A DNA stretch of 59,235 nucleotides, the filler included, from Aplysia californica (Eukaryota): assembly GCF_000002075.1 (NCBI RefSeq). It is 2 parts of 2 records of this genome, joined end to end, with 100 filler letters (N's around TTAATTAATTAA, not from the genome) between each part and the next. Parts side by side here need not be neighbours in the genome. Positions count along the whole stretch, not along the records: positions 29,635 to 59,235 come from NW_004797387.1; 1 more part is not named here. The stretch is one strand, 5' to 3'. This document shows positions 39,342 through 59,235 of the stretch, one piece after another (the first letter of the stretch is position 1; the number at the start of each line of letters is the position of its first letter). The notes beneath the pieces were generated by a model. The model was not told the origin of the DNA. It made no database searches and was given only the letters and a program-made list of their open reading frames with translations. Position numbers and translations under genes: made by a program.

Positions 39342-41332
39342 TGTGGAATGTTCTTGAAACTTCTTGTGTAGCAACGAGTTCATCAAGCTGAGGTTTCTTG
39401 TGATAATCAACAGTCCAAGCATCTCTCTCCCCCCATGTAAAAATAGGGCTGAGGCCTACAATTTATCTTAGAGTTGATCTAATGTTGAAAGAGATTCTAT
39501 TACTATTATAATATTATTATATTCTGATATTTTCTATCTCTTTATAGTTCGCCCTGAACATACCCACTGCTGCTGCTGCTAATGATGATCATGTTGATGA
39601 TGTTTGTTTATTCTCAATTTCCCATCAGGAAATTCTCCTGTGTTTCGTGCGTATAGAGGGAGCATTATTGGTTCATTTGTCTAAGATCTAATCAACATTT
39701 ACTAAATAATGACACCCCGGTTCTAACAGTATTTCCATGTGTGTATAAATATAAGCACAGATTGTATATTTGGACAAATTTCTGAGTTCATTGAGCTTTG
39801 TCTTGATGTGATATTTGCTTCAGCTGTGGTGATGAGAATGCAGAGAAGTTATGGTGGTTAATGCTTAAGTTGTATGTGTAGAGGTGTATGTTAGTTGAGT
39901 TGTACGTGTAGAAGTGTCTTATAGTGTTGTGTAGAAGTATAGAGAGGAGTGTTCAAACTTTTCCTATGAACAATTTCTTTTTTCTCCTTGGTGTAGATCC
40001 AGCTTCAGCCATAATGATTTGTTACCATTCTCTCTCTTTAATATATTGTTTGTGCTGATTGTTTTCACTTCTCCTACTGAAACTTTTAGTCTGAAAATTT
40101 GCGTCTATTTATGTATACCGTATCATGTAGAGATAGTTGGTGATAGTAAGGAAAAAAAACCTGCTTCCTGGCAACAGGCTCTTTGAAGGGGAGGAAGAAA
40201 ATCAAAACAAAACCGAAATAATACCATATCTAGCATAGAGAGAAATCCTCTAGCTTGCCTTTCTAAGTGTCACCTGTCTCTATGTCGTCTCTGTTTGTCA
40301 AAAAATGTAATGTAACTCCGGGCACTGCTGGTGCAATAGTCTAACAAAAGCTCTATCAAAGTTTTCTTCTCACAATGGCGACAAATCAAAATGGCTTCAT
40401 CAACTTTTTTTTTGTATCTTTTTAAGAAGTTGATACTTACCAACAGTATTGTTCATATTGACCACCATCTGTCCTGTCCAGAGACTGAAAGAGGACTCTT
40501 ATATGTAGTGAAGTCCACTCAAACCGAACATGATTAATCTGAAAAGAGCGGTATACCAAAAGAAAATAAGATCCCAAATTTTTGGGGGATAATTTGCAGA
40601 GCTCCCATTTCTAACCCAAAAAGAATTTCGAGGGTTATGTCAACTAATTCTTCACAAGTACCGGCAGCCTTCAAGTAACACAAATTTTTGAGTCTTACAC
40701 GCTTCAAGATAGTAAAATAGGAGAAAGAGAAACAAGAGCACTTGTGTGTTGATTGAAAACGAGAGAGAGGCATCACCAGTATATTGCTTGCCTACATTAA
40801 TTATGATGAACCACATTCACATCTGTGGACCTGCACACTATGTACAGGCCTTGTGAAGCAAGGAAGTACGTCTGTCGTGTGACTTTCTGTTAGCCATGAC
40901 CTATTGTCTCTGCAAAGTTGTTTAGGCCTACATACTAATACTTATAATTTCCAGAGGCCCTGCACATGAGCACAGGACGGCATGAGTGTGTTCCATTATG
41001 TCACTGGCACTGGGCTTGCTCACATCTCGACTAGCACAGAGCACAGTTGAGTGTGCTCATCTACTCTTATGACTTTTTCTAAAGCTGACAAAGCACGCTG
41101 ACAATGTCGAGAAAGCAAAATGCGAACAGACTGCTTCTCAAATTGCTGTTGTTAAATTGGGTAGGTGAGAAAAATGTTCAGAAAGTGAAATTTGCTGCGA
41201 GCATGGCATTCCTAACTCAATGCTGTTGACAATCGGATCAATGATCACTGTTTATTAAGCAAACCTCTCTAAACCAAAGGAAGTCGGAGTCTCTCAGATT
41301 TCAGTTCAAACGGACTCCACTGTGTGCTCCAA

Positions 41333-41463
41333 GTTAGATTTCTCTACCATAAATTGTGATGATAATCAGGGGTTCGAGTTAAGACTTCTCTACCATAAAT
41401 TGTGATGATAATCAGGGGTTTGAGTTAGACTTCTCTAGCATAAAATTTGATGGTAATCAGGGG
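41333..41463. repeat. ~45-bp tandem repeat, 3 copies
   Basis: gttagacttctctaccataaattgtgatgataatcagggg repeated. Confidence 0.9.
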
Positions 41464-44525: not shown

Positions 44526-45061
44526 GATCACCAGAAACTGAAATAACCAGTTCTCAATTTAGTATATAAATAACTTTAGATGAATTTTCGTGTGTTAATG
44601 TAAACATATTATGTTATATATATATATACATTTTTTTCCCAAGTCAAATTTTTTCTGTGAAGACAGTATATGGGGAGATGCAAGAGAATGGTTTGTTTTT
44701 GTTTGTGGGTTATTGATCAGAGGGAGCATTTTTACAAATGGTTCCAGTATTGTGAGGCAGATGAGACAAAGGGGCTATGTCAGCTGCTAGACAACCATAC
44801 AGATTGTGTCCTCATGTTGTCCGCTGGTCAGGGCTGCTGATTGTGTTCCTAAATTTGATGTATGCTTCCCAAGAAGTTGAGATTGTTTTAGTAGAGTGCT
44901 ATCAAGTCTGCTGGAGTAATACTAGTATAGATTGTGAAGCACACAAAGCTTGCTGTTGAGTGGGAATTTGCGCTCTAAAAATGCTTTCTATAATTCTAGT
45001 AGTAGTATTTGTCTTGCTAGTAGCCCTCCACGTCCCAGTATGTTACTGGAACACTTCTCTC

Positions 45062-45147
45062 TTTTCGTCAGAACATAGAACAGAAAATTTCTCTTCGTCA
45101 GAACATAGAACAGAAAATTTCTCTTCGTCAGAACATAGAACAGAAAA
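45062..45147. repeat. 30-bp tandem repeat, 3 copies
   Basis: ttcgtcagaacatagaacagaaaatttctc. Confidence 0.9.
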
Positions 45148-46059
45148 TAGAACTATCATGCTGAAGTCAAAAAGTGGTACCTGGACTAGTCTTTCTGTAT
45201 AACGTAGATGCTGGTACTATTACTATAGACCTTGTAAAAGGCACAAACTCTAAGGGGCGCAGAACTGTGAGCTTTTTGCTTGTACATACATATGACAAAT
45301 ATACTTGACCAAATCAAATCTATGAACCAGCGGTTGTTCCTTGTTCCTCCGCTGGCTATGTTGTTTGTGTACAGAGATAAGAAATCATTCCACCACTCGG
45401 ACAATTCTACCTTTATGTCCTTCTAAACTACCCTCTCTTTCTTGCTTCAAACTCTTTATGAAAAACCTCAACATATTCAGTTCCAGATGGTATTATTCCT
45501 CATTTATTGTACCCGCATTTCATCATTCCATACTGTGACCTTATTAGAGAGTACTTATCAAGAGTTTTAAAATGGTTGTTCATTAAAAAAAGTTCCTTTA
45601 TGTGAAGTTTTGTGGATTTTTTATTTGTATTGCGTTTTGTGTGTGTATTGCGTTAACCCATGAAAACCAAATTTGGTAACATTTCCATTAGATACTTGTA
45701 GTTGTTAAATTACTAGTACTAGTATTACCTAGTTTAATCATAGTTTTATTTTCATTGTTTCATATTTAAAAAATTTGTAGTTACTTGGAACAATTTTGCT
45801 CTCAAGGGTTGACATGATTCTATCTTGTTTCCTGTTTTGAGAGTAGGCCTACATGAACTAAATGAAATTGTTCATGCTGGCAAGTTGGCAAAATAAAGGC
45901 TGTTTTGATTGTGATGCAAAGTGCGCATTATAATTACAATGCCAAGAAGAAGACGACTCCAGAAGAGCATCCAACATGCTGGGGCTCAGGCATTAAGAAA
46001 ACAAAACTGTAGTTATTCTCCTGCTGTTGGGGAGGTACATGTGTTTTACTCGAGTGCAC

Positions 46060-46284
46060 GCAGACACTGCGACTACCACAAGGAGACCGTTGAACATCTT
46101 CTCCTTCACTGCCCAAACCTGGCAGTTCTTCGACGCAGGCTCCTACACACACCCACATACTTACAAAGCCTGCTCTACTCTGGCGTTGAACAGATGACAA
46201 GGTGGTTACTTGAGAGAGGCATTGCGCTGCCAAGAGCGAAATGCTCGCAGTTAAAGGGATTTGAAAACAACGACAACAACAACA
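46060..46284 (+). mobile_element. 5'-truncated non-LTR retrotransposon (I/R1/Jockey-type C-terminal CCHC) with TSD
   Basis: HCDYHKETVEHLLLHCPNLAVLRRRL; (AAC)n tail; 13-bp TSD TACTCGAGTGCAC at 46047-46059 and 46285-46297. Confidence 0.85.
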
Positions 46285-46569
46285 TACTCGAGTGCACATG
46301 ACCAGGGTTCGAGTCTTAGCAGAGGCAGGTCTAGAAAACAATGATGGGATTCCTTAAGAACGACATCATGTTTTAGTAAGAGTTTTATGACACTTGCAAC
46401 ACAATAAAGTCATAATATAAATAACCAAGATTAGAGGTGTTATAAGAGAGTAACAAACTCAAAAAAAAAGGAGGACAGACAGGACCACAGATGCTCGATA
46501 GAAAAGTAGCAGCAAACCACACCAGAGCACCAAGCAACCATGGAACATCATCTGGATCAAAGAACCACT

Positions 46570-46658
46570 TCAAACAAACACAACACAAAGAAGTAACTTA
46601 GTAAGGGACAGGAACAAAACAAATGAAATATATGGCCTTTTCAGTCAGATGTTTTATT
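46570..46658 (-). terminator. Polyadenylation signal of the minus-strand transcript
   Basis: AATAAA (plus-strand tttatt, 46653-46658) with a U-rich upstream tract and a GU-rich downstream element (tttgttttgttcc...tttgtgttgtgtttgtttg); strand skew flips nearby. Confidence 0.55.
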
Positions 46659-46929
46659 ATGATCTTCAATTAAAAATAAAATAAAATAAATAGAAAGGGG
46701 GGAGGGCACATCAATGTCACATAAGCAGAGTTTGCTGTTCTTGTGTTACCTCTTCCGTTTGCCAGACACCACTGACCACGACCAGCAGCAAGAACTGCCC
46801 CCATCAGCGGCCAGTGTCTGTAACCCCTGCTCACCACGGGGAGGTGGAAGTAGGATTTCGAGCAGGATAGGAAGAATTTCCACAACACTGACAGCCTGGC
46901 CGACAGGAGAGTTTCCTTGTGATCCAAAT

Positions 46930-47165
46930 TACAAACCCTACACTTTACTCTTTCCCTCAACTTATCAAACTGCCAACCCTACACTTTAGTCTTCACCTAA
47001 ACTTGTCATACCACAAAACCTACACTTTGCTCTTCCATCAAATTGTTTTCTTACCACAAACCCAACATACTGCTCTTCCCCTCAACTTTTGAAAACCGTA
47101 AACCTTACTCTTCTCATCAACTTGTGAAAACCGTACACCTTACTCTTCTCATCAACTTGTCATTC
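46930..47165. repeat. Degenerate 35-42-bp tandem repeat, about 6 units
   Basis: aaaccctacactttactctt(c)cctcaactt recurring. Confidence 0.8.
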
Positions 47166-49495
47166 TCATACCCCCCGACCAATATTTGGGCTTCAATTGA
47201 CCTCCCCCCCCTCCAAAAAAAACCCCCATCCCATTCACAACTTTCTTAACCCAACTCTATCTCAAACCAACTCCCAAACATGTCTAACCTCTTGCACAGT
47301 AGAGCACAAGGAAATCTGTCCCTAACCAAACCTTTATAACTGACAATTCAGTCCTGAAAAACCCAGACCATCAATACTGACCTTTCGGTCTAAATCAATT
47401 TGTGAAGGCAAACACTTCAAGTTGGTGTAATTAGACCATTAGAATTAAGAGACTCAAATTTTCTCGCTTGGCCAGTCTTGGTGGAAATTCTTCCCTCAAA
47501 TCATGGTTGTATGCAATGTTGTAGGTTTGGTATGTGCAAGTCGGAGAGTTTTGTTAGAACATACATCCAGGATAATGGATCCAGCCTCATTTTTGTCTCT
47601 CATACGTGATTTTTTTTTTGACATCAAAAACACATTCATTTAATAATGAAATTGGTACATAACAAATAATTGAAGGTAGCTTTTTTGTTTCAAAACAATC
47701 TAATAAAAAATTTTATTAAATAAATCTAAATCCCACGAGCACTTTTGGAAAGCGTCACTTTGTAGTGAACGGACAACATCTGAAATAGGTGGTCAGCGAG
47801 AGGGTCAAGATTTGACTGACCACACATCACAGACCACCTTGTGTGCTCTCCACCACCCCCGCACCACCACTGTCGCTGGCCCTCCCTCCCTCCCACTTTC
47901 AAGCTCCTTTTGAGCATGTACAGGTTACGGGAGGACCAGCGCTCAGTCCGTGGGGCGGACAAAGCCAGGGATCTGCACGGCGACACCAGTCCACACGGAG
48001 TTACCTCAGACATGATAGCGGCGCGGAACAGGAACGAAAGGAGACACAAATATCACCAAGACTATCAGGCGTGAGAACTACGAGAGTTGAGATGAGAAGG
48101 GATGGATAGTGGTTGTCCTCTAACAAAGGAGGGAAGCATTGGTCAGAAGTGCGGCAGGGCGGCAAGTTTACCGAGGTAATAACATATTCAATACATGACA
48201 TGAAGACATGCAAAATCTAGCGGAAGGACCGGGGGGAGGCGGCGTTACTGGAATATATAAACTGCAGTGGGCCAAACAGAACAGGGGTAATGACTGGGCA
48301 AGAGTACAAAATGTGTTTGAGTGTTCTTGTGTGTCTGTGTTTAAGAGTTTGTGCGTGTGTTGAAGACACTTGCACTTGCAGGGAAAAAAGTCTCAAGTTT
48401 CAAGCCAAAAAAAAGTTATATACAAAAGAAAGCAGTTAGACCTACACCCTTTTACAAGAGACTCCAATACAGAAAGGTTCAACCATTGAACACAATCAGG
48501 CCTACAGCAATATATGAAAGATGCAAAATCCATAAAGATCTACGGAGTTAGGGTCAACAGAGCCAGCCTTTAGCATAGGATCACAAAAGAGACAGGAATC
48601 AAAGATTATTTTAAAGAGTTCAAACAAAAGGCGCACGCAAAGGGACAGACCACAAGGGAAATTTTTGTTTAAAAATTACTCTGGGCTATTGAAGCCTGAA
48701 TGTATATCACTGCAAAAGCCTACGCCTATAGTCAGCAAGCATTTTAGAAGGGAGTGCATGTGATAAAAGGGCAGGATTGTACAAGTGAACGGTTCTCTAA
48801 ATGCTATAGTGCAGAAAACACGCGCAAGTTGTTTTTAGATTTGGCAGTTAAACGAGAATGGGGTACAACAATACTGACACCATAAGGAAAGAAATCAGAG
48901 AAGAAAAAATCCGACAGAAATTATAAAAAGAGGGAATGAGTCAAGATTAGGTTGACAAAAGTACGACGAAATTTTGTGGTAGAGTATAATGTGCTGCTTG
49001 AAAATTGTATCACACGAAGACAAAAAAAAAGGTCATGCTGATGAAAAAGCACCAGTGGGGTCAAGAAAGATTAGAAATGCTTAGAGGTAGTACAGAAGCA
49101 GATATATAGAAACATACACCGGTGTTGAGTCACGGAATGAAAACATATCGGTTATGTAACTAGTGGGAGAGTAAGAGGATGCGTGACGGACAATGGAGGA
49201 CTGGTGTCACTCTGCAGGGCGCCTGACCGACCCGAGCTGTCTAACTAAGCCAAACAGTCGGACAGCTCAGGCCTTTTTTTTTTTTAACTTCGACTTTTTA
49301 ATATAACCATTGTGTTTATGCTCCTCACCAACTGCTCTCCACAAAACAAAATCATATTGTTCATAAAACTGAACTTTGACGCAATACTAATTACGGCTTC
49401 TCGCAAGACAAAATACATTATTATTAATTTAATAAAACTGAACTTGGACACAATACACACCAACATTTTACACTGAACACCCAAATTTGACATAC

Positions 49496-49640
49496 CAGTA
49501 CAGGGCATGGTGCTGGAACCCATCCCATCCGCACACAGGACAAAGGAAGTATTAGTCAAGGCAGGACAAAATCTGGAGTAGGGGGGAGAAGGGAAAGGAG
49601 AGTCCAGCGGCTCGCGCTTGGGTACAATCAACCGACCGAT
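49496..49640 (-). other. Array cassette, 145 nt
   Basis: gggtatggggg...gttgtgttctgcag|ATC ... CTG|gtatgt. Confidence 0.65.
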
Positions 49641-49956
49641 CTGCAGAACACAACAGTCATGGCCCCCATACCCGAAACATAAACAAGTTTCCCCACGAGG
49701 ATATCTACACTGCTAGGTGGTGTACATTTTCAAGTCACAAAACAGATCAAGCAGAAAAACATTTTTGGGATTCATCCTGGCATTGGAAAATCTACTTCTT
49801 TATAAATGGTACGAGTTAAAAGCACTGTGTAAGAAACGAACTAGTGAACAACATTAGTTTCCTTTTTTTTGCCCCAAAAAATTACCAGTAGGCTTCATAT
49901 TGACTAGTGTATTCCACTTATATATATATATATATTGCATACAGGACATTTCTTAC

Positions 49957-50016
49957 CAAGAATTCCTTGGTCTTGTCTAGATCTTCACCGACACTTGTTG
50001 GTTTGCCACTCTTCAC
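49957..50016 (-). other. Array cassette, 60 nt
   Basis: tttttagtgcag|GTG ... TTG|gtaaga; open only in phase 0 (VKSGKPTSVGEDLDKTKEFL). Confidence 0.65.
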
Positions 50017-50425
50017 CTGCACTAAAAATCGCACAGACAAAATGTCCTATGCTACCTACATATAGGCTATGTGGACGAATTTACTTCAAGTAGACCAGGT
50101 TCAAAACTGACTGCAGACAATCATTTAGGCTTATGTTTCTAGGAATTTAAATTTTCAAAAACTTAAAAACTTGTGACTGTTCCAGCCTTAAATGATTACT
50201 TTGTCAATAACAAAATAAAATAGGTTGTCTGATATTTAACTTTCACCTTCACATTCACTGTGCAAAAAAACAGCATTTGTTTAGTTTTACGTTACTTAGG
50301 AAAGGGAATGAAATGATGAATTGACATGTTGATGAAATATAAATTTATATGTCAAGCCTGGTATTGTATTCTACATGAGAGCAATTAACACTTGACAGAC
50401 GACAGGGATACCGTACTTGGCTTAC

Positions 50426-50529
50426 CATACCAGGGGGACGATGTTTTAAAATAGACAAGACCACGGGTAGATTTTCAATGGCTCCTCAAGCACACAGAAG
50501 CACTTCCGGGCTTTTTGCACACAGGGCTT
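50426..50529 (-). other. Array cassette, family X
   Basis: GGGGAAATG...GCAGTTACAG|AAG ... CTGGTATG|GTAAGCCAAGTAC; 104 nt; stops in all three frames. Confidence 0.75.
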
Positions 50530-51100
50530 CTGTAACTGCATGATAGAACACCAACATTTCCCCGGCCCAAAACAACCCCCAACATAAACTACCATAATCC
50601 TCATAAACTACCATAATCCTCATACAAGCGTAGCACAATGAAAGACTTCAAGTGAAAAATCACAATATTTTGTCACTCGGACCAACTTAAAGCAGAACAA
50701 AATTGTCCCACAAAATAATTTATAAAATAAAATTAAGAAGTCAAAGTATTAAAACTTTCAGTAAAAGTATTCAAGTGGTAAAACTAGAAAGATCCATACG
50801 ACTACTTCAGTATAAGTATTATCTAAAACAAGTCTTGCAAGTTACATCAAAATTACTAAACATTACCCCATCTCAAACTTCCAGGACAAAACTAGTCACA
50901 AAAAGCGACAAGTATACCAGTGCAAGTTAGGAGGAAGAACCTTCAAAGGAGCAAGGTATTACACAGGCAACATCAGGCGGCCATCATGTGGTTAAGTCTG
51001 CACCGTGTTACATTCAGTCATATGTTGGTCAATTGTTACATCCGAAAGTCTGAAATCCACAGGAGAGTTAGCCTTCCCCGACCCTCCCCAGGAAATTTCT

Positions 51101-51139
<39 letters not shown>

Positions 51140-51473
51140 TAATGCTTTCTTCAAAGATAAATTTTACGAGAAAATTTTTCCTTTTCCAAGTCTATTACTT
51201 GTTAAATATGAATGACATTTACAATTACTTCTAGAATCACTATTTCAATATTCAGATGAATTTCTCTTTACTTTAAATGAAGAGAGAAATAACAAGGTTC
51301 AGTACTTTATTATATTTTCAATCTCTTTAAGAGGAATAAAATATATTTCATAGTTTAACTTATTTAAGAAAAATACTGATGTAAGAAGCCAAAGTAAAAT
51401 GTAGAAGATCGAGATAAAATACAATTCCCAGTGATGCAAGTACAGACAGACAGCTTCATTACAAGAAACTTAC

Positions 51474-51621
51474 ATGCCACAGCGGACAGAGACTGGGCAG
51501 GCCAAACAAAGATCGCAGAGTCACGGATACCGACTGTGGCTGGGAAGGTATCAAATTCTGACCGCCGGACACTGAACACCCGCCATATCTCCAGATTCCA
51601 GGTTTGGTTTCTATGAAATTT
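51474..51621 (-). other. Array cassette, family X (shifted donor)
   Basis: GTGTAGTTACAG|AAA; ancestral donor lost, CAT|GTAAGT available downstream; 148 nt. Confidence 0.65.
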
Positions 51622-52029
51622 CTGTAACTACACAATACACAAGCACATACCCTACCCAGCAAACGTAATGCCTACTGCCCATAGTTCTCAAGAAAACGTA
51701 ATTCTTTACTTTGGATTTTTTTTTTACATTGACAAAAGATTAGGCACATTATTTTCCTTTACCTTCTTTTCATGTAATTTAATAGCTATTGGTCTTATAA
51801 AAATTGGGACTTTTTTAACAATTTCCTTTGTACATTCATTTTGCGTAGTTAGAATATTGTTTAAAAACATTTAGGATCAAAGTTTTGTAACAGGAAAATG
51901 ATAGATGAACAAATCAACTGAAGTTAAGCTCTATCCTGAACACATTACAGTGGGCAAAGGTTCTAGATTCTAGAGACATTTCAGCTATTTTTGGGACTTT
52001 AAAAAAGTGGACATTAATACTGGCCTTAC

Positions 52030-52162
52030 CAGACTGGATTAACAGATTTAGTTGGTCGGAGACACCGAGATATTGACACATGGAAGAGGATTACTTGTCC
52101 CCCAGTTTTTCATCTCATTACAACGTACTCGTCAACACCACTTCTTGTTTAAACAAGGACTT
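52030..52162 (-). other. Array cassette, family X
   Basis: GTTCAGTTCCAG|AAG ... GTCTG|GTAAGGCCAGTA; 133 nt. Confidence 0.72.
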
Positions 52163-53032
52163 CTGGAACTGAACAATATAGCAAGAGCATGGCCTCGACC
52201 CCTTACCCAACAGATAAAAAAGAACCACTTTAGTGACCCATTAAAATTTTTTCAACAATAAATTATCATATGTTGAACGCTTAATTTAAGGTAAACAAAA
52301 TTTTGAAGGCAAATGAAAGTAAATATTTCAAATAATCAAAGAAAGGATCATTACATTTTGCAAAACTGAAAAAAGGTTTTGAGTTTCACAAGACTTACGC
52401 AAAGATCATTTAAAGAACTTTGCACATAATCATTAACTTGAGCTCATTATTTCATTTTAAACCCAAATGTACAGCAGCTAGCATATTGCCTGCTTTACTG
52501 GTATCATTAAGTAGGCCATTAAAGGATTGGGGGGGGGAACCAAGTAAGATGATAAAGTAAAACAGAAGAACCTGTTGTGGCACACCAGGAGGTCAAGAAT
52601 CTCTCAGGCCCTAGGTCACATCCTCAGTCAAACTTGTCAATACTCAAAATGTCACACCTGAAATTCTGCTGAAATCTACAGGCAAAAAATTACCCCCCCC
52701 CCCTCCCAGTCCCAGAACAAATATAACTTTCCACAACTGTTTTTCTTTTATTCAATAAGTCAATAGAATCAGCTTTTTTTACTTTTTCAATGTTATTTTT
52801 ACTTATTCACCAAGAGAAAGCAATTTTACTATCTCTAGCTATAATAATATGGACAATAGGAAAATGAATTTAATTGGATAAGTTTGTAAAAAACTTAGAA
52901 AATGTCATAAAAACAAACCAATGCTTGTGGGATTCAAGAATATGGGAAGATTGAAATAGTCTATTGGTAATGTATATTTTCAAATACCATATTTATCAAT
53001 ATATGCCGCAGAGACAGACGTACTGGGCTTAC

Positions 53033-53155
53033 CACACCAAGACCTTTTGGGGAACCAGACAAAACTGCGCGCAGGAGAGTAAGCGTCGCAACCGTACATC
53101 ACACCATACATGAACACTGCTTTGTGCATCCCTCTTGTCTACATGATAAGAGTTT
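53033..53155 (-). other. Array cassette, family X
   Basis: GGGGAAATG...CTGTAGTTACAG|AAAC ... TTGGTGTG|GTAAGCCCAGTAC; 123 nt. Confidence 0.75.
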
Positions 53156-53522
53156 CTGTAACTACAGAATACAACACAGACATTTCCCCAGCCCAGAACA
53201 CCCCCAAAGACAACAACAGGACCAGACTTAAATTTCTTATACAACCTTAGCATTGAAAGACATTTTACAGGGGCATTTCTTACATTTCTCGACATCAAAC
53301 AGCATTTATTGAAGGAAAAATAAAGTTGGGATCGAGTAATAATTTTTTTTCAAATCAGAGGAAAGTAAATAACCAGCAAAGTGTTATCTTTTTATCATTT
53401 AATTATTTCAATCTCAATTTACAATAGCTCAAGTTGTTAAAAATTAACAAAATAACTATCTTCTCTAGTCATATCATCACTGTTGCTCAAGAGAATAATA
53501 AAGAGAACTGGCAGAGAACAAC

Positions 53523-53615
53523 CTGAAACTGGGACACGCCTTGGGCCAGACCAGGACTTGGTACTTTCCCCTCTCAGTGGCTAGCAGGTTACTTTCAAAA
53601 GTCACACCAGGAAGT
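53523..53615 (-). other. Array cassette, family Y (others start at 51049, 52668, 54760)
   Basis: Shared GGGGAGGG..GGGAAGG-(C/T)TAA..T(A/G)GATTTCAG-ACTTTCAG-GTGTGAC; donors weaker (CAG|gtt). Confidence 0.62.
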
Positions 53616-54017
53616 CTGAAATCTAGAGACAGTTTAACCTTCCCTTCCCCTCCCCTAGTTTACCTGGTAGCAAACTTACATTTAAAGGATTAGATATCTA
53701 GATTTTTTTTAAGACTAAGAAGATTCATTAAGATTAAAATTTTCAGATCTCATAAAATATTCAACTATTTTATTCTTTTCAATTGAAAGTGATATCCTAA
53801 TCTTTCTGGGCGAACTAAGCCATGAGCATGAAAAGAGTTGTATATATTCTTTTAAGCAAAATAATAGCTCAGCAATTACAAATGCAGATTGAATTAGTCA
53901 TTGTGAGAACTCAAAGGTTAAACTACAGATGAGACCAATCATATCATAGAGGTGTAAACTTTAAAAGATTTCTACATAGCATTTCATAGAACAGAAAATA
54001 CCGATTACCAGGCTTAC

Positions 54018-54130
54018 CATACCAAGATGATGGAGATAAGAGGTATAGGCTGATTACAGGTTTTGTGACTGTGCACCAATTGTGCTCCCTGTTCCTCCTC
54101 ATGAGACATGTTCGTTTACACGTTCTTTCT
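54018..54130 (-). other. Array cassette, family X
   Basis: GGGGAAATC...GTGTAGTTGCAG|AGAA ... TTGGTATG|GTAAGCCTGGTA; 113 nt. Confidence 0.75.
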
Positions 54131-57100
54131 CTGCAACTACACAATGCAAGGAGATTTCCCCACCCAGTCCCCTCCCAGCGCCCAACGCATCCAACAACAC
54201 AAGAAATATCGCATACAATGTAAGTACAGATACAATTTTTTTCCACACGGCATACCAAGAATATCTGCTTATTTTGTTCATAGCTCATCACGATTTTAGT
54301 AACGCAAAAAAATTTTTTCCTCAAAAGTGAGAATGTAAAGAGAATGTAATAAGATTTCAACAAAATTTCTTTGTTAAAGCGATGTGAAGCATATCAACAC
54401 AATAATGGTCATTTAGTGCTGAGAAATAGACAGGCAGACGGAAACAACAGAGGGAAAGTACAGTAAAAATATAATTGTTGACCAACTCAAAGAAAGCATA
54501 AATGGTGACATTAGGTATAAGAAAGTGAAACAGTCCTTGCAAAGATCATTTTCAGCATAATTTCAGGAAGTTATTAAAAATAAATAAACCAAGGGACAAA
54601 TTATTTTTTTTATCGCATATGCAATTCCACAAAAATACAACAATAAGAAAATAAGTGTACCACAGTGTGGAGAAAAAGAAACCGCTGGGCAACTTTTCAC
54701 CCAAAGAGATGTTCGCGACTTTAGAGCGCCAGACACTCGCATTACACACGCACGTCACACCTGAAAGTAAGAAATCCAGAGGCAAATAATCCTCCCCCAC
54801 CAGACCAACCCTCCCCTCCAACTGAGGCACCACCCATAACCCAGTCCAAATCACAAGGCAAAAAGCAATAAAGAAATGCATACACAAAGATCTGAACCAG
54901 TCTAACTTTTGTAGATAAACAGACGGGGAGCATCAGCTCAAATCTATTCAATTTTATGATTTTTAAGATGAAAAATCTAATATATTATTTCCTTTAATAC
55001 CAAATATTTAATTCAAAGAAGATTTCATCTCAACTCTAGCAAATACTTTCATTATGACCAGACACTAGAAAATATTAGTATAATGTTTTCCAAACAATTT
55101 TCTCTAGAAAGAATATCATTAAGTGAAATTCAATCCTTACTGAACATTCATGAAAACTAATTCTTATTCAACATAACCAAAGGGTAAAAAAATGCATAAC
55201 AAGATAAGTCATTACTGACCGCTTTCATATTTCTCAGTAAAAGCAAAAATAGATCTCACACACCATCATCACCCACGGAGTTGGCACCGATCTCCCAACA
55301 CAACGCAAAGGACAGCTGGCACTGAAAACATCATTCAAAGCAAAAGGTCCGCAGACCCTCAACCCTTATCTTACAAGGAAACGCTACATACTATTAAATC
55401 ATTCAATATAAGATTTTTATCTAATCATTGTAAAAATTTCAGCTAAATCATTGTGCATTTAGATCTCTATTATCAAATCATTGTACATTTAGAGATGTAC
55501 TGATATTAAATCAAGATCTACATAAAATAATTGTACATTTAAATGTGCATGAAACATTGTATGTTTAGATCTATGTTTTGCAAGTTATTTTTTAAGTGCT
55601 TTCTCAAACATGACAAGTTGAATTACTTTTTTAAAAATGAAATATCAGTAAGTGTGAGCTTTTATCAAGACTTTGAAGATAAAGATTTTCAGTACAATTT
55701 CATGGAACAACGAAAGAGTCCAATATTGATTAAATCGCTTTGAATACATTATTGAATGATCTACAAAATACGATTGTAATAAATAATTTCATACCAACAC
55801 AACTTGGGTTTCAAGAATTTTCAGCGAACTTTACCCGTTTCAGTCGTATCCTCCGAATGTTTGTTCCCGCAACATTTGTCTTTATGCCTGGAAGAGACAC
55901 TAGAGGAAAAAAGCAACACCCACCCACCTCCCCGTCTAGTTGAACTAGCTTTTACACATTAATAACATAAAATGGGATATTGTGTCCTGTTACTGTCAAA
56001 AGAAAATTATCCTGATGAGGTCACAACTTGGAACATAAGCAATATGTTGCATTTTTACACTTTAAAAATTAGTTCCTCACCAACACAACTATCATAATTT
56101 CATATTACATTGCGATACTATACAGGAAGTATTCAATTAATTCAAGCCAGCTCTGTTGCTAAAATGTAACTGCTACAATTACAGCACATATTAATTCTAC
56201 ATGATATTCAATTGATTATTTTACAACTTCTATACAAGGAACTTCAAAGAAAGAAATAATTTTTTTAAAACAAAAACAGCCTTGACTTAACAAGCTTTAC
56301 AATATCCTTCTTTAAAAACCAAAACCAAACACCCTCAGCCTCGAACAACACAGTCACCGGTCACATAACTACCCAACTTCAGCGAACGCAACTGCTCAAC
56401 TCCGAACCATCACGCGCTTGGGCACTTTGCCACACCTTTGTCAACGACCGCCATTCAACGCCACGAGACAACGAGACCAGATCACTGAAAGAAATTCCCT
56501 TCACAAACACATCCAAAACCCACACACGTAACTGTTAACATGACATTTCATGAAGTACGGCTTGCATTCATAAAGCAACAATGTTACAAACAAAAAACAG
56601 CATCCATTATACCTCAAAGGAACAGGTATTTAATAATGCTTAAGAAAGTACAAAGACTCAATAGTGTATGTGCAAGCAGTGGATAAGATGTATGGTGGGG
56701 TGGAGTTCTTCTTTATGTCAGTATATTTGAATTTGAGGTGGACTCTTAAAAGGCACTGCTTGAAGTTGAAAGTGTACAGTATTATGTTTTAAGAAAAACA
56801 AAGAGGTGTTTAAGCCATTGAAGGCCTTTTCAGGTTTATTTTTATCAAATCAACATCACGAATGACAAAGACAGAAAAGAGCAAAAAGCTTGCCTGAGAA
56901 CACAGTACCCAGTCTTCTGAACAAGAAAAAACAGCAGGTTGCCACCGTGTCCCGATAACAGAGAGAGGAAGTCCATGTGTACTCGTTCTTTATCGCAGTT
57001 CTGGTTCTTCACAAATCCCAACTGAAAGAAAGCTTTGTACCATAGAATTAGCTCCCCTCCCCCCCCCCCCCCCCACCCCAGAGCTCTCTATAAAATACAT

Positions 57101-57865
57101 AAATTATCATCAGTTACTGTTCACTCTTCAACTATTTTCAAAAGACGAAGTAACTTTTCTTCACTAAGCCATGTTCATCAATTATTATTCACAAGATGCA
57201 AACAATTCAATCAATTAAGTTGAAAGAAAATTTTTGGAAATGACAAATCCAAAATTCAGACATCGTTATTAATAATTTGTCAAGACTTATTGATTTTAAT
57301 GAGTCTACACCATCTAGCATCACTATCAACTTCTCAGGTACAAACCCGAACTCTCTAGTTTACCGTTTATCTGGATAGCAAGATCAGAACCTCTGACAGC
57401 ATGGATCAACGCCGGCCGAATTTGCCAAGGATCGCACCAGGACTCGCAATTGTGGAAAACTTTAGCTGAAATAGAGCCTTTGTCAAGACAACTATCCCTA
57501 ACGTAGGTCATTCTAAAAGAACATTTTTATACACATTTTCCATAAATTATCAAAGCTTAAATCTCAAACGACAATAATAGTACCAGTATGTATCTATTTT
57601 TGTTTTCTCGTTACATAATTTTCGCAACTTCAGAACAACTTTGATTATAAGCAAAGGCTCCTTCTTACGAAAAAGTCAGTTATCATCAGAGAAATATATT
57701 TGTATCCATTAATCTCAATTGTATTTGTTCAATATTGTCCTCAAGAAAGCTAGCAATAGGCAAGTAAAGAGATCACTATCACAGTCTAGAGGTATCTTCA
57801 AAATACGGCACCAATATACGGCACATAAAATATATTCACGTCATCTTCAAAAAGAACCTCAATAC

Positions 57866-58124
57866 CAAGACTAGAGAGAAGGTGCACTGGTCAAGAGTGG
57901 ATGACAGAACTTCATGTTGCTGCTGCTGTTGTCATTGCAGATGTTGCTGTTGCAGTTGTGGATGTGAGGATGGACGAGACCCTGTGACTTCTAGAACGGG
58001 TGGTAGTGGTTGATAAGACAGTCCCCCGGCTCCACTAGATTCTCCTACAGGCGCAAGATGTCCCACGGCTAGTCCTACTCCTTTCCATTTGAACCTCCAA
58101 AGTCCCTCCAGTTACTCCACAAAG
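57866..58124 (-). other. Probable stop-containing exon of an unidentified minus-strand gene whose body lies beyond the gap or window end
   Basis: gttcattttcag| acceptor; GC-richer with a CAG/CAA tract; early stop in every frame (xFVE*, xLWSNW..KE*, LCG..RRI*); possible donor TTG|gtattg. Confidence 0.5.
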
Positions 58125-58427
58125 CTGAAAATGAACTAGCATACCCAAAAAAAAATCCCCAAAAAGCCATTTTTTTCCCTCTTTCCTGCTACATTGTTTC
58201 TTTTTATTTTTTTCTTCTTTCTTTCTTTTCTGGTTTTTTTTTTTTCTTCTTTCTTTCTTTTCTGTTGTTTTTTTTTCTAATTTTTTCTTTTTTTTCCCCC
58301 TCCTCTTTTCTTTTTTTTTTTCAATTTNNNNNNNNNNNNNNNNNNNNNNNNNNNNNNNNNNNNNNNNNNNNNNNNNNNNNNNNNNNNNNNNNNNNNNNNN
58401 NNNNNNNNNNNNNNNNNNNNNNNNNNN

Positions 58428-58850
58428 TGTCGACTGGCGTGGGCGATCATGGACCTCCACTTCACTCTGTCTTGACTTGTCGACTGGCGTGGGCGATCAT
58501 GGACCTCCACTTCACTCTGTCTTGACTTGTCGACTGGCGTGGGCGATCATGGACCTCCACTTCACTCTGTCTTGCGTTGCAGCAATAGTGTCTGTTGTTC
58601 TTGCTGCTCCTAACCATGTTGTCGTTTTATCCAGTATCCTTTCCCTCTGTCTGCATCTGCCTCTCTTTCCATCAAACTTGCCCGTTGTTACAATATTCTC
58701 CAACGCTTCTTTCCGCATTGTGTTTCCAATGAACTTTGCCTCTCGCTTTCTTATATTCGTCATAAGCTGTCTTCTACAATGCTTCTACCAATACTTCTTC
58801 TTTTGTTTTTCTAGCTGTCCAAGGGATACGTAGCAAGCGTCTTATGAACC
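58428..58850 (-). mobile_element. RTE LINE 3' end whose last 50 bp are tandemly repeated
   Basis: IRKREAKFIGNTMRKEALENIVTTGKFDGKRGRCRQRER...QDRVKWRSMIAHA; 50-bp unit at 58428, 58478, 58528. Confidence 0.85.
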
Positions 58851-59204
58851 ACAACTCTTGGATGGTACATAGCCATAATTTAGTAGTGTCTGTTGGCCCC
58901 TGAAAGGCCGAGTCGGTCAGAAAGCAGCCTGCTTCCGAAGTATTCTAAAGTGTGTCGATGGAGGCACAAAAAGCATTTACAATCAATTGCACAAAACTTG
59001 TTGACAACAAAATACATTTTTGTTTGAATACTAACATCCAGAACGTTCGCAATCCAGGCCTAAGTGACGTCATATCAGTTTACTTTATTAATTGTGTTCG
59101 CAGTTTCTCACCCTGGCTAGGAACTGTCTGATCAATTTGGATTACATTGTAATTTTCTGAATTAATTGTTGTTTTGGTTGCTGACAAATTAGAGAAGGGA
59201 GATG

Positions 59205-59235
<31 letters not shown>

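Follow-up and report, generated by a model that had tools for sequence, protein, structure and literature searches.

A regular minus-strand array of seventeen exon-like islands in an abundant, mostly unspliced RNA of Aplysia californica

The window analysed is a stretch of 59,235 nucleotides of Aplysia californica DNA, in which a 29.6-kb piece (NW_004797387.1) carries, on the minus strand at 49400..58150, an array of 17 GC-rich islands with a period of 530±68 nt. Island spacing ranges from 376 to 659 nt (mean 530, CV 0.13), a regularity matched by 0 of 100,000 random placements; GC content is 0.49 inside the islands versus 0.29 in the spacers, and the autocorrelation of GC at a lag of 530 is r=0.56 in the array versus at most 0.29 in flanking sequence or control loci L001-L005. 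All 17 units are exon-like in size, GC content and polarity, and the spacers are intron-like, with lengths of 300-500 nt. The regular array of about 17 exon-like cassettes proposed by an earlier sequence-only reading was recovered, with 17 acceptor-like AGs that each lie within 1 nt of where that reading had placed them. The zinc-finger gene LOC101858098 neighbours the array. On the 5' side of the array are an N gap at 58328-58427, a LINE-like fragment and then the end of the piece. On the 3' side, judging by sequence features, the minus-strand unit probably continues through 46300..49400, with exon-like stretches, acceptors near 49211, 48119 and 47779, a donor at 48005, and AATAAA at 47717 and 46658; the strand skew flips near 46200, and in the piece no coding exon was detected on this side of the array.

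Along the minus strand (slashes mark splice junctions), the array begins with C1 (57866..58124), an island of about 260 nt with acceptor TTTTCAG and an uncertain donor, followed by C2 (57364..57465) with donor ACG/GTAAAC. A long G-run with a G-quadruplex-forming pattern (57054..57080; 57040-57090 is missing from the X12 contig) precedes C3 (56894..57021), the best donor of which is GC-type and which contigs cross unspliced. C4 (56358..56484) has alternative donors at 56436 and 56358, C5 (55835..55887) has tandem acceptors at 55899/55887 and a donor-like site heading its G-run (55928), and C6 is located at 55264..55321. Nine islands then fall into two families. The Y units are C7Y (54660..54760), which has lost its first AG and retains an AG/GTGTGA ratchet-like junction; C9Y (53500..53615, 3' end approximate), in which the acceptor is followed after 8 nt by a donor-like GTGTGA (53608); C11Y (52586..52668), with a NAGNAG acceptor, a second AG/GTGTGA at 52658 and a 7-nt deletion allele at 52606; and C14Y (50918..51049), with a CTAAC branch-like motif past the G-run and its donor-like GT moved to AT/GTAAC. 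The X units are C8X (54018..54130), with a G4-pattern G-run and tandem donors GTATG-GTAAG-GTAAT; C10X (53033..53155), with acceptor UACAG/AAAC and tandem donors; C12X (52030..52162), with the strongest donor of the array (CTG/GTAAGG) and a donor-like site heading the G-run (52207); C13X (51474..51621), with acceptor UACAG/AAAU; and C15X (50426..50529), with four donor-like GTs in tandem. The array ends with C16 (49957..50016), which has an AG/GTGAAG junction and a donor TTG/GTAAGA downstream, and C17 (49496..49640), which has donor CTG/GTATGT and a donor-like site heading the G-run (49672). Consensus at both splice sites of these non-coding cassettes is clear in the X units, C16 and C17, and weaker in C1 and at the 3' ends of the Y islands. 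The expectation of a GT donor for every island fails for C1, C7Y, C9Y and C14Y, which have no good donor at the 3' end; in Y units a donor-like GT occurs instead 0-11 nt past the acceptor.

The acceptor and donor cores of the five X copies and four Y copies are about 75-80% identical (X acceptor 80%, X donor 78%, Y 76%). The family motifs match 5, 3 and 3 times versus 0.07, 0.00 and 0.01 expected, in the array only and on the minus strand only of the 29.6-kb piece, an enrichment that is partly circular because the patterns were derived from the copies themselves; by itself, TTTCAG does not distinguish the strands (12 minus, 10 plus). The two families interleave in the 5' to 3' order Y X Y X Y X X Y X, and tandem duplication of an XY pair is supported by homology for at least nine units; C1-C6, C16 and C17 share only generic features. 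Of the about 17 units for which duplication had been claimed, homology is shown for the nine of the two families. As that reading also held, the rest is unalignable: island interiors carry no family signal (pairwise z ≤2.7), and the spacers are unrelated except for one pair (z 4.6). The interiors have no common reading frame, ORF lengths in all three phases are random, and no peptide motif is shared in any phase. Indels within interiors, including frameshifting ones of 1 and 7 nt, occur at the neutral rate; a 1-nt insertion at 52078 is present in all reads, and therefore C12X is 134 nt long in those animals. The C12X acceptor, the C13X donor and the first AG of C7Y have decayed. In C13X the X donor motif no longer has its GTAAG and a new CAT/GTAAGT lies about 25 nt downstream; donor turnover is seen in C14Y as well. 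Donor-like sites number 4.1 per kb on the sense strand of the array versus 0.9 on the antisense strand and 1.6-1.7 in the flanks (36 observed on the sense strand versus 23.7±4.8 after local shuffling), and clustered donors number 11 sense versus 2 antisense, with 7-9 in 13 kb of the flanks; tandem donors in the array are 5-9 nt apart. From these sequence comparisons, selection appears to have kept the signals and their spacing while the bodies drifted.

Words of the array were found in 18 data sets of 7 studies, which contain 0.90-0.92 of them; 15 of these have contig sets of 2-101 M letters. The contig sets X4 and X12 were taken as RNA on the basis of contig-set size, and continuous sequence of the whole array, spacers included, is present in small contig sets that are likewise presumed to be RNA. 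Reads of two raw runs and contigs of two sets were aligned over 51140-57050 (5,911 nt), a range that spans C3 to C13X; for C1, C2, C14-C17 and the 3' end, the evidence from sequencing data is the shares of words given above. In this 5.9 kb there are 5,641 poly(A)-primed reads, almost all sense-strand, corresponding to a sense expression of about 170-240 reads per million. No splice joint was found in the 5,641 reads or in the two contig sets over the aligned range, a result that leaves room for spliced forms below about 20%; Logan contigs drop rare forms. At the C10X donor, the bin has a mean depth of 92-175 and no joint. Contigs run continuously over acceptors and donors through 51326-56369 (depth 198) and 56382-57032 (depth 160). 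The 3'-tag reads start in spacers and therefore cannot report spliced molecules. The read peaks sit at genomic A-tracts within the spacers, and three of the highest coincide with the three strongest A-rich windows, all on the minus strand: a main pile-up at an A10 tract (51716..51730), the largest at an A-rich block (52740..52794) where letters other than A, among them the T of AATAAA at 52750, appear as A in the reads, and the third at 53389..53408. These spacer peaks are interpreted as internal oligo-dT priming. Sense reads without joints and unbroken contigs together mean that the steady-state RNA is long: in the sampled libraries, the transcript is abundant and mostly unspliced. The efficient splicing of cassettes that the sequence-only reading implied is not supported by these data, but its proposal that splice-type signals, and not a peptide, are the target of selection is supported by the kept cores, the unalignable interiors with indels at the neutral rate, the donor turnover in C13X and the enrichment of donors on the sense strand.

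Other searches of the array were negative. A scan of Rfam found nothing in the array, not even a MALAT1-type element; a tRNA scan found none; and a tandem-repeat finder found no unit-level repeat. Folding of each unit compared with shuffles gave z from -1.9 to +2.2, pairing of the G-blocks with their own downstream part gave P=0.08, and hairpins were no more numerous than on a control sense strand (30 versus 31); a small hairpin over the X donor was considered and rejected as not stable. The zinc-finger gene served as a synteny anchor in Elysia, Biomphalaria, Haliotis, Lingula, GCA_932274485.2 and three ENA assemblies: the 10-20 kb downstream revealed neither an array nor DNA similarity, and the sole gene there is a SAM-dependent methyltransferase in Lingula. 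The combined X acceptor-plus-donor pattern had no match in metagenome contigs, and literature searches found no description of the locus or of a MALAT1/Gomafu-like abundant RNA in Aplysia.

The presence in an abundant RNA of 17 exon look-alikes, not spliced in the reads examined, points to a battery of decoy splice sites more than to variable exons. Splicing of known decoy exons is seldom observed without a block of NMD (PMC6097662), and the alternative donors reported for them lie 7-12 nt apart (PMC7373989), a spacing that the tandem donors of the array resemble. The array resembles the decoys of SF3B1 intron 4 (E4a-f), OGT intron 4 and SNRNP70 intron 7 (PMC6097662, PMC7373989) in consisting of non-coding cassettes with real-looking splice sites, in having several donors a few nt apart, and in belonging to abundant unspliced RNA with junctions rare or absent in normal cells. 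Each of those cases comprises from one to six cassettes that are unrelated to one another, conserved in sequence and flanked by two coding exons, whereas the array has 17 regular units (530 nt), at least nine of them tandem-duplicated, with bodies that diverge when paralogues are compared and with G-runs ahead of most acceptors; the piece has no coding exon downstream of it. The best fit to these data, tentatively preferred at slightly less than even confidence, is a set of decoy exons, amplified in tandem, that captures early spliceosome factors and retains the RNA, unspliced, in the nucleus; of the options in the sequence-only reading, decoys with nuclear retention fit best. The array would occupy the 3' portion of a single long Pol II transcript from the minus strand, either a lncRNA or the detained terminal intron or giant 3' region of a gene starting past the assembly gap. 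Its 17 units would be exon-definition modules with a G-run, a branch-like motif, often tandem AGs, a GC-rich body of 60-150 nt, and often tandem or immediately adjacent donors. As decoy exons, they may load U1, U2AF and hnRNP F/H-type G-run binders into early complexes that rarely complete splicing, so that an intact RNA stays in the nucleus; in addition, U1 sites at regular intervals may suppress cleavage in the A-rich spacers, and rare leak-through splicing would yield frame-less products to be removed by NMD. Spliceosome engagement is something we infer, because no junction read was seen. A decoy model also needs intron-terminal sites as competitors; flanking constitutive exons or a host gene were not found in the piece.

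An ordinary multi-exon lncRNA or chain of non-coding exons, spliced in an unsampled tissue, stage or condition and observed here as a slowly spliced precursor, is a less probable account that nevertheless deserves some weight. In its favour, islands and spacers look like exons and introns, a possible terminal exon is located at 47779 with AATAAA at 47717, and four runs are a small sample in which rare forms are lost from contigs, but spacers at a depth of 160-200 without a joint, several islands without a usable 3' donor, and Y donors 0-11 nt past their acceptors all disagree with it. It is unlikely that the array is a relic, i.e., a decayed series of once-coding or once-spliced exons in a long 3' UTR or lncRNA with signals that no longer have a role: no clear constraint is visible in polymorphism (1 variant in the signal cores versus 2.5 expected), some cores have decayed and the relatives' loci examined have no homolog, but cores of 18-30 nt that remain 75-80% identical beside unalignable bodies and spacers are unexpected under neutral decay, which would not maintain a CV of 0.13 in the spacing and would not give rise to a replacement donor. 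Alternative last exons, with every unit spliced onto a constant upstream exon and given a poly(A) tail in its A-rich spacer to yield short variable C-termini, fit poorly and are a shade less likely again. Poly(A) reads do have their ends 90-190 nt ahead of the following acceptor, spacers carry AATAAA, ATTAAA or variants, G-runs could be downstream auxiliary elements, and loose read ends are counted only from about 28-31 reads upward; against this, the tail ends so counted fall on genomic A-tracts with internal non-A letters overwritten, contigs are unbroken at acceptors, and ORFs are of random length with no shared peptide motif. In Dscam, lola and mod(mdg4), variable units encode homologous domains in one frame. 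The array resembles such clusters in its tandem exon-sized units with their own acceptors and two interleaved subfamilies, but lacks a common frame, tolerates 1- and 7-nt indels, and has no junctions or clear poly(A) sites.

Sensing of SAM by METTL16/METT-10, for which the X acceptors would be substrates (UACAGAAA at the 3' splice site) in an m6A switch on splicing like that of the worm sams genes and MAT2A, is very doubtful. Two X acceptors match UACAGAAA(C) of the C. elegans sams-3/4 and MAT2A switch, the MAT2A system includes a retained nuclear isoform, and such a motif overlaps just 916 of 403,563 mouse acceptors (PMC8208822). The exact worm nonamer UACAGAAAC is found in C10X and the 8-mer in C13X, with an upstream GUAG similar to mouse MAT2A hairpin 1. 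The motif was noticed after the fact, and because the X copies are paralogues it counts as one ancestral event; UACAGARA is exact in C10X and C13X, 7/8 in C15X and broken in C8X and C12X, and the minus strand of the piece has four further copies of the 8-mer. In the predicted folds, the motif is part of a stem or the structure has very little stability (0 to -7 kcal/mol), with no convincing stem-loop to display it, and no SAM synthetase exon is present in the piece. Least probable of all is a host of small RNAs (a miRNA or snoRNA cluster) or a set of dispersed transposon ends. Repeated non-coding exon units are typical of SNHG14- and C19MC-type hosts, but the array has no Rfam match, folding z-scores near zero, no excess of hairpins and no recurring C/D boxes. 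As for transposons, the spacers have no common element, the X/Y motifs occur nowhere else in the 29.6-kb piece, and the only pile-up of reads from other loci lies at 54386-54440, with none at the motifs at ≥92% likeness; within this piece and these reads, the dispersed family that the sequence-only reading had named as fatal to its proposal was not found. Recursive splicing offers a further likeness, to ratchet points and RS-exons, in the AG/GT of C7Y, C11Y and C16 and the acceptor-8-nt-donor arrangement of Y units. Ratchet points subdivide very long introns with a spacing of many kb, whereas these are about 1 kb apart and most units have no AG/GT.

Gomafu/MIAT, hsr-omega, MALAT1 and Airn are architectural nuclear lncRNAs. 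With these and with noncoding RNAs retained on chromatin by U1 motifs (10.1101/310433), the Aplysia RNA, in the part aligned, shares length, abundance, a non-coding and largely unspliced state and repeated putative splicing-factor motifs, but they have simple motif repeats or scattered U1 sites where the array has whole exon-definition modules. More speculatively, and with rather low probability, it may be an invertebrate architectural nuclear RNA built of tandemly amplified exon-definition modules that, instead of being spliced, would sequester U1, U2AF and factors bound to G-runs, and so serve as a tunable sponge for splicing factors or as a retention switch. In vertebrate introns, known decoy exons are ultraconserved and occur singly or in small numbers, and their signal is inseparable from their body. 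The array offers 17 natural replicates, at least nine of them made by duplication, in which signals and spacing alone were kept, and it would therefore show which features make a splice site recognised rather than used: tandem donors, a donor heading a G-run 30-50 nt before the acceptor, and an acceptor followed after 8 nt by a donor. A lncRNA that is merely spliced in a tissue-specific manner would be a curiosity; if the RNA is nuclear, it would be an abundant RNA like MALAT1 or Gomafu in a classic model of neurobiology.

The array of 17 exon-like islands on the minus strand (49400-58150; units C1 to C17, numbered 5' to 3') is as regular as the sequence-only reading had proposed. The 17 acceptor-like sites agree in position with that reading, their spacing is 530 ± 68 nt (coefficient of variation 0.13; none of 100,000 random placements was equally regular), the islands have 49% GC compared with 29% in the spacers between them, and GC autocorrelation at a lag of 530 is 0.56 in the array versus at most 0.29 elsewhere. 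On average a unit opens at its 5' side with an A-rich block (-200 to -80), followed by a G-run (-60 to -40); a short pyrimidine tract precedes the AG, and downstream come a GC-rich body and then U-rich sequence. Patterns of G-run plus acceptor occur 12 times on the minus strand of the array, never on its plus strand, and once or twice per 16 kb of flank. The two proposed families of units are real: the acceptors of family X (54130, 53155, 52162, 51621, 50529; minus strand) and of family Y (54760, 53615, 52668, 51049; minus strand) are grouped by homology of their cores, the conserved stretches at acceptor or donor, with within-family acceptor-flank z mostly 5 to 14 and core identity of 76-80%. 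Four X donors score z of 2 to 9, and the X and Y motifs were confined to the array in a scan of the piece at 29635-59235. No clear mutual homology was found among the other eight units, and the interiors are indeed unalignable (body pairs at z of at most 2.7), as are the spacers except for one pair at z 4.6.

In the X donors, which are clusters of the form GTRTG-GTAAG-CC-nn-GTA, the GTs stand 5 and 9 nt apart; the central GTAAG is gone from C13X, which has acquired CAT/GTAAGT about 25 nt downstream. In Y units the acceptor is followed after 8-11 nt by a donor-like GTGTGA, with the second AG lost and the GT retained in C9Y, the donor-like GT shifted to AT/GTAAC in C14Y, and the first AG lost to leave AG/GT in C7Y. 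A donor-like site also heads several G-runs 30-50 nt 5' of the acceptor, a distance at which a normal intron is impossible. By generic splice matrices that approximate, and were not trained on, Aplysia sites, donor-like sites number 4.1 per kb in the sense strand, 0.9 in the antisense strand and 1.6-1.7 in the flanks; the 36 sense sites compare with 23.7 ± 4.8 after shuffling of 50-nt blocks, a modest excess. Bodies vary at the neutral rate (6 variants versus 5.3 expected, including indels of 1 and 7 nt) and acceptor cores carry 1 variant versus 2.5 expected, a comparison of few variants. None of the three phases gives a peptide that is longer or related among units. Scans of the array for RNA families, tRNAs, a folding signal, surplus hairpins and box C/D patterns were all negative. 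A Dscam/lola-type coding cluster and a sno/miRNA host were each tried as models and failed.

Between 0.90 and 0.92 of the 31-mers of the whole 8.75-kb array are present in 18 public runs from seven studies, 15 of which have contig sets of just 2-101 million letters; none of the 18 is registered as RNA. Whole-genome sequencing of the Aplysia californica genome, about 0.9 Gb in size, would not bring a single-copy locus to a depth of 160-200 in contig sets as small as 1-30 Mb; thus, these runs are probably RNA or targeted libraries. One of them (X10), registered under another organism (B, 2025), contains 0.90 of the array words; its label may be wrong, its source may be a very close relative, or the sample may be mixed. 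Over 51140-57050, two raw poly(A) runs that resemble 3'-tag libraries (short GGG leaders, T-tails) gave 2,544 and 3,097 reads, about 170 and 240 per million, nearly all from the minus strand. Read-depth maxima fall in spacers, and the sole three 20-nt windows with at least 14 A (53408, 52794, 51725) underlie three of the highest peaks. Within A-tracts, letters other than A appear as A in the reads, among them the T of AATAAA at 52750 (20 of 26 and 23 of 27 reads) and the G immediately 5' of AATAAA at 53774, a pattern typical of internal oligo-dT priming, here on continuous RNA; real cleavage by variant signals would be a less probable source of the tails. The X and Y units (51700-53900) are covered several times more deeply by tag reads than the 5' units (54100-57050), a difference explained in part by weaker A-tracts in the latter (the A-run at 54612 has only 11-34 reads). 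A short dispersed-repeat fragment in a spacer (54386-54440) collects off-locus reads and contigs on both strands.

Setting aside 339 small loose-end classes, no splice joint was found in the two poly(A) runs or in two small contig sets (X4, X12). A tag read primed inside a spacer is necessarily unspliced at that point, and contigs would, given assembler pruning, conceal any form present at less than about a fifth of the depth. One X12 contig (51326-56369, depth 198) runs through eight units and into a ninth, and a second continues from 56371 upward; an X4 contig (56382-57032, depth 160) crosses the C3 donor and the C4 acceptor. The whole X12 assembly is about 1 Mb (5,671 records) and 51326-57039, at a depth of about 200, is among its longest contigs, so that the locus is either extremely abundant or targeted there. 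The C3 G-run (57040-57090, 51 nt) is missing from the X12 contig; the ends of the missing stretch share a TA micro-homology and have no GT-AG, and either a deletion allele or a reverse-transcriptase skip over a G-quadruplex would account for it.

A C2H2 zinc-finger gene (LOC101858098, Pfam zf-C2H2), conserved across lophotrochozoans, has its last exons on the plus strand of the piece at about 30191-32961. The final exon matches the C-terminus of XP_035825002.1 of Aplysia californica without a difference, which identifies this animal DNA as that of A. californica. The orthologue in Haliotis, Lingula and GCA_932274485.2 lies head-to-head with an aminoacyl-tRNA synthetase gene (tRNA-synt_2). The very long T-rich plus-strand region 3' of this gene, to about 46 kb, may be a long 3' UTR. 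By strand skews, the T-rich strand is plus over 30 to 46 kb and minus over 46 to 58 kb, which suggests that two transcription units converge near 46.2 kb. Tandem repeats include a 35-nt minisatellite with 20/15-nt sub-units (37958-38388) and smaller arrays (36485-36704, 41332-41463, 45060-45148, 46925-47160). A candidate HDV-like ribozyme (46797-46866, minus strand), which matches Rfam RF02682 at 26 bits (E 0.48, under the gathering threshold) and whose P1, P3 and catalytic-C segment appear intact by eye, lies close to where the minus-strand unit is inferred to end. A strong hairpin (47860-47965, minus strand; -52 kcal/mol, z -4.1) includes a (GGGA)n G4-type run and has no Rfam match; downstream of it come another long hairpin, which extends to about 47790, and AATAAA at 47717. 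The 5' side of the array has an A-rich block, an N gap (58328-58427) and a minus-strand fragment (58428-59205) that resembles the 3' end of an RTE-type LINE; three 50-nt tandem copies in it adjoin the gap, and Pfam gave no reverse transcriptase match for so short a fragment.

Signals are conserved and bodies are free, and the RNA is sense, abundant and unspliced where visible; splice signals may thus be kept for recognition rather than use. A duplicated battery of decoys within a detained region or nuclear lncRNA is tentatively preferred, at a little short of an even chance. A doubtful alternative is a multi-exon lncRNA of the ordinary type whose splicing takes place in other tissues or stages. 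That the array is a relic is improbable, and alternative last exons are even less probable. Lower again is a METTL16 switch: motifs of this type, which occur at 0.23% of mouse acceptors (PMC8208822), are present at C10X (UACAGAAAC) and C13X (UACAGAAA), but these copies trace to one ancestral event and the needed stem-loop is absent from predicted folds. Least probable of all is a small-RNA host or a set of transposon ends; diploid-like allele fractions in the reads argue against a high-copy repeat.

The closest tested mechanism appears to be that of decoy exons. Such non-coding cassettes are bound by U2AF, are spliced with low efficiency, come to light chiefly under NMD block and keep the RNA retained in the nucleus (PMC6097662); their donors commonly lie 7-12 nt from one another (PMC7373989). 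Noncoding RNA is held on chromatin by U1 motifs too (10.1101/310433). A literature search found no account of this locus or of any periodic, duplicated decoy array, and neither metagenomes nor eight other genomes, each covered for 10-20 kb downstream of its zinc-finger orthologue, showed a counterpart. Most of these flanks fall short of the 16-25 kb between gene and array in Aplysia and so are not evidence of absence. The array is a real, expressed and unusual feature, a putative member of the decoy exons or of the lncRNAs retained by U1, and would work as they do.
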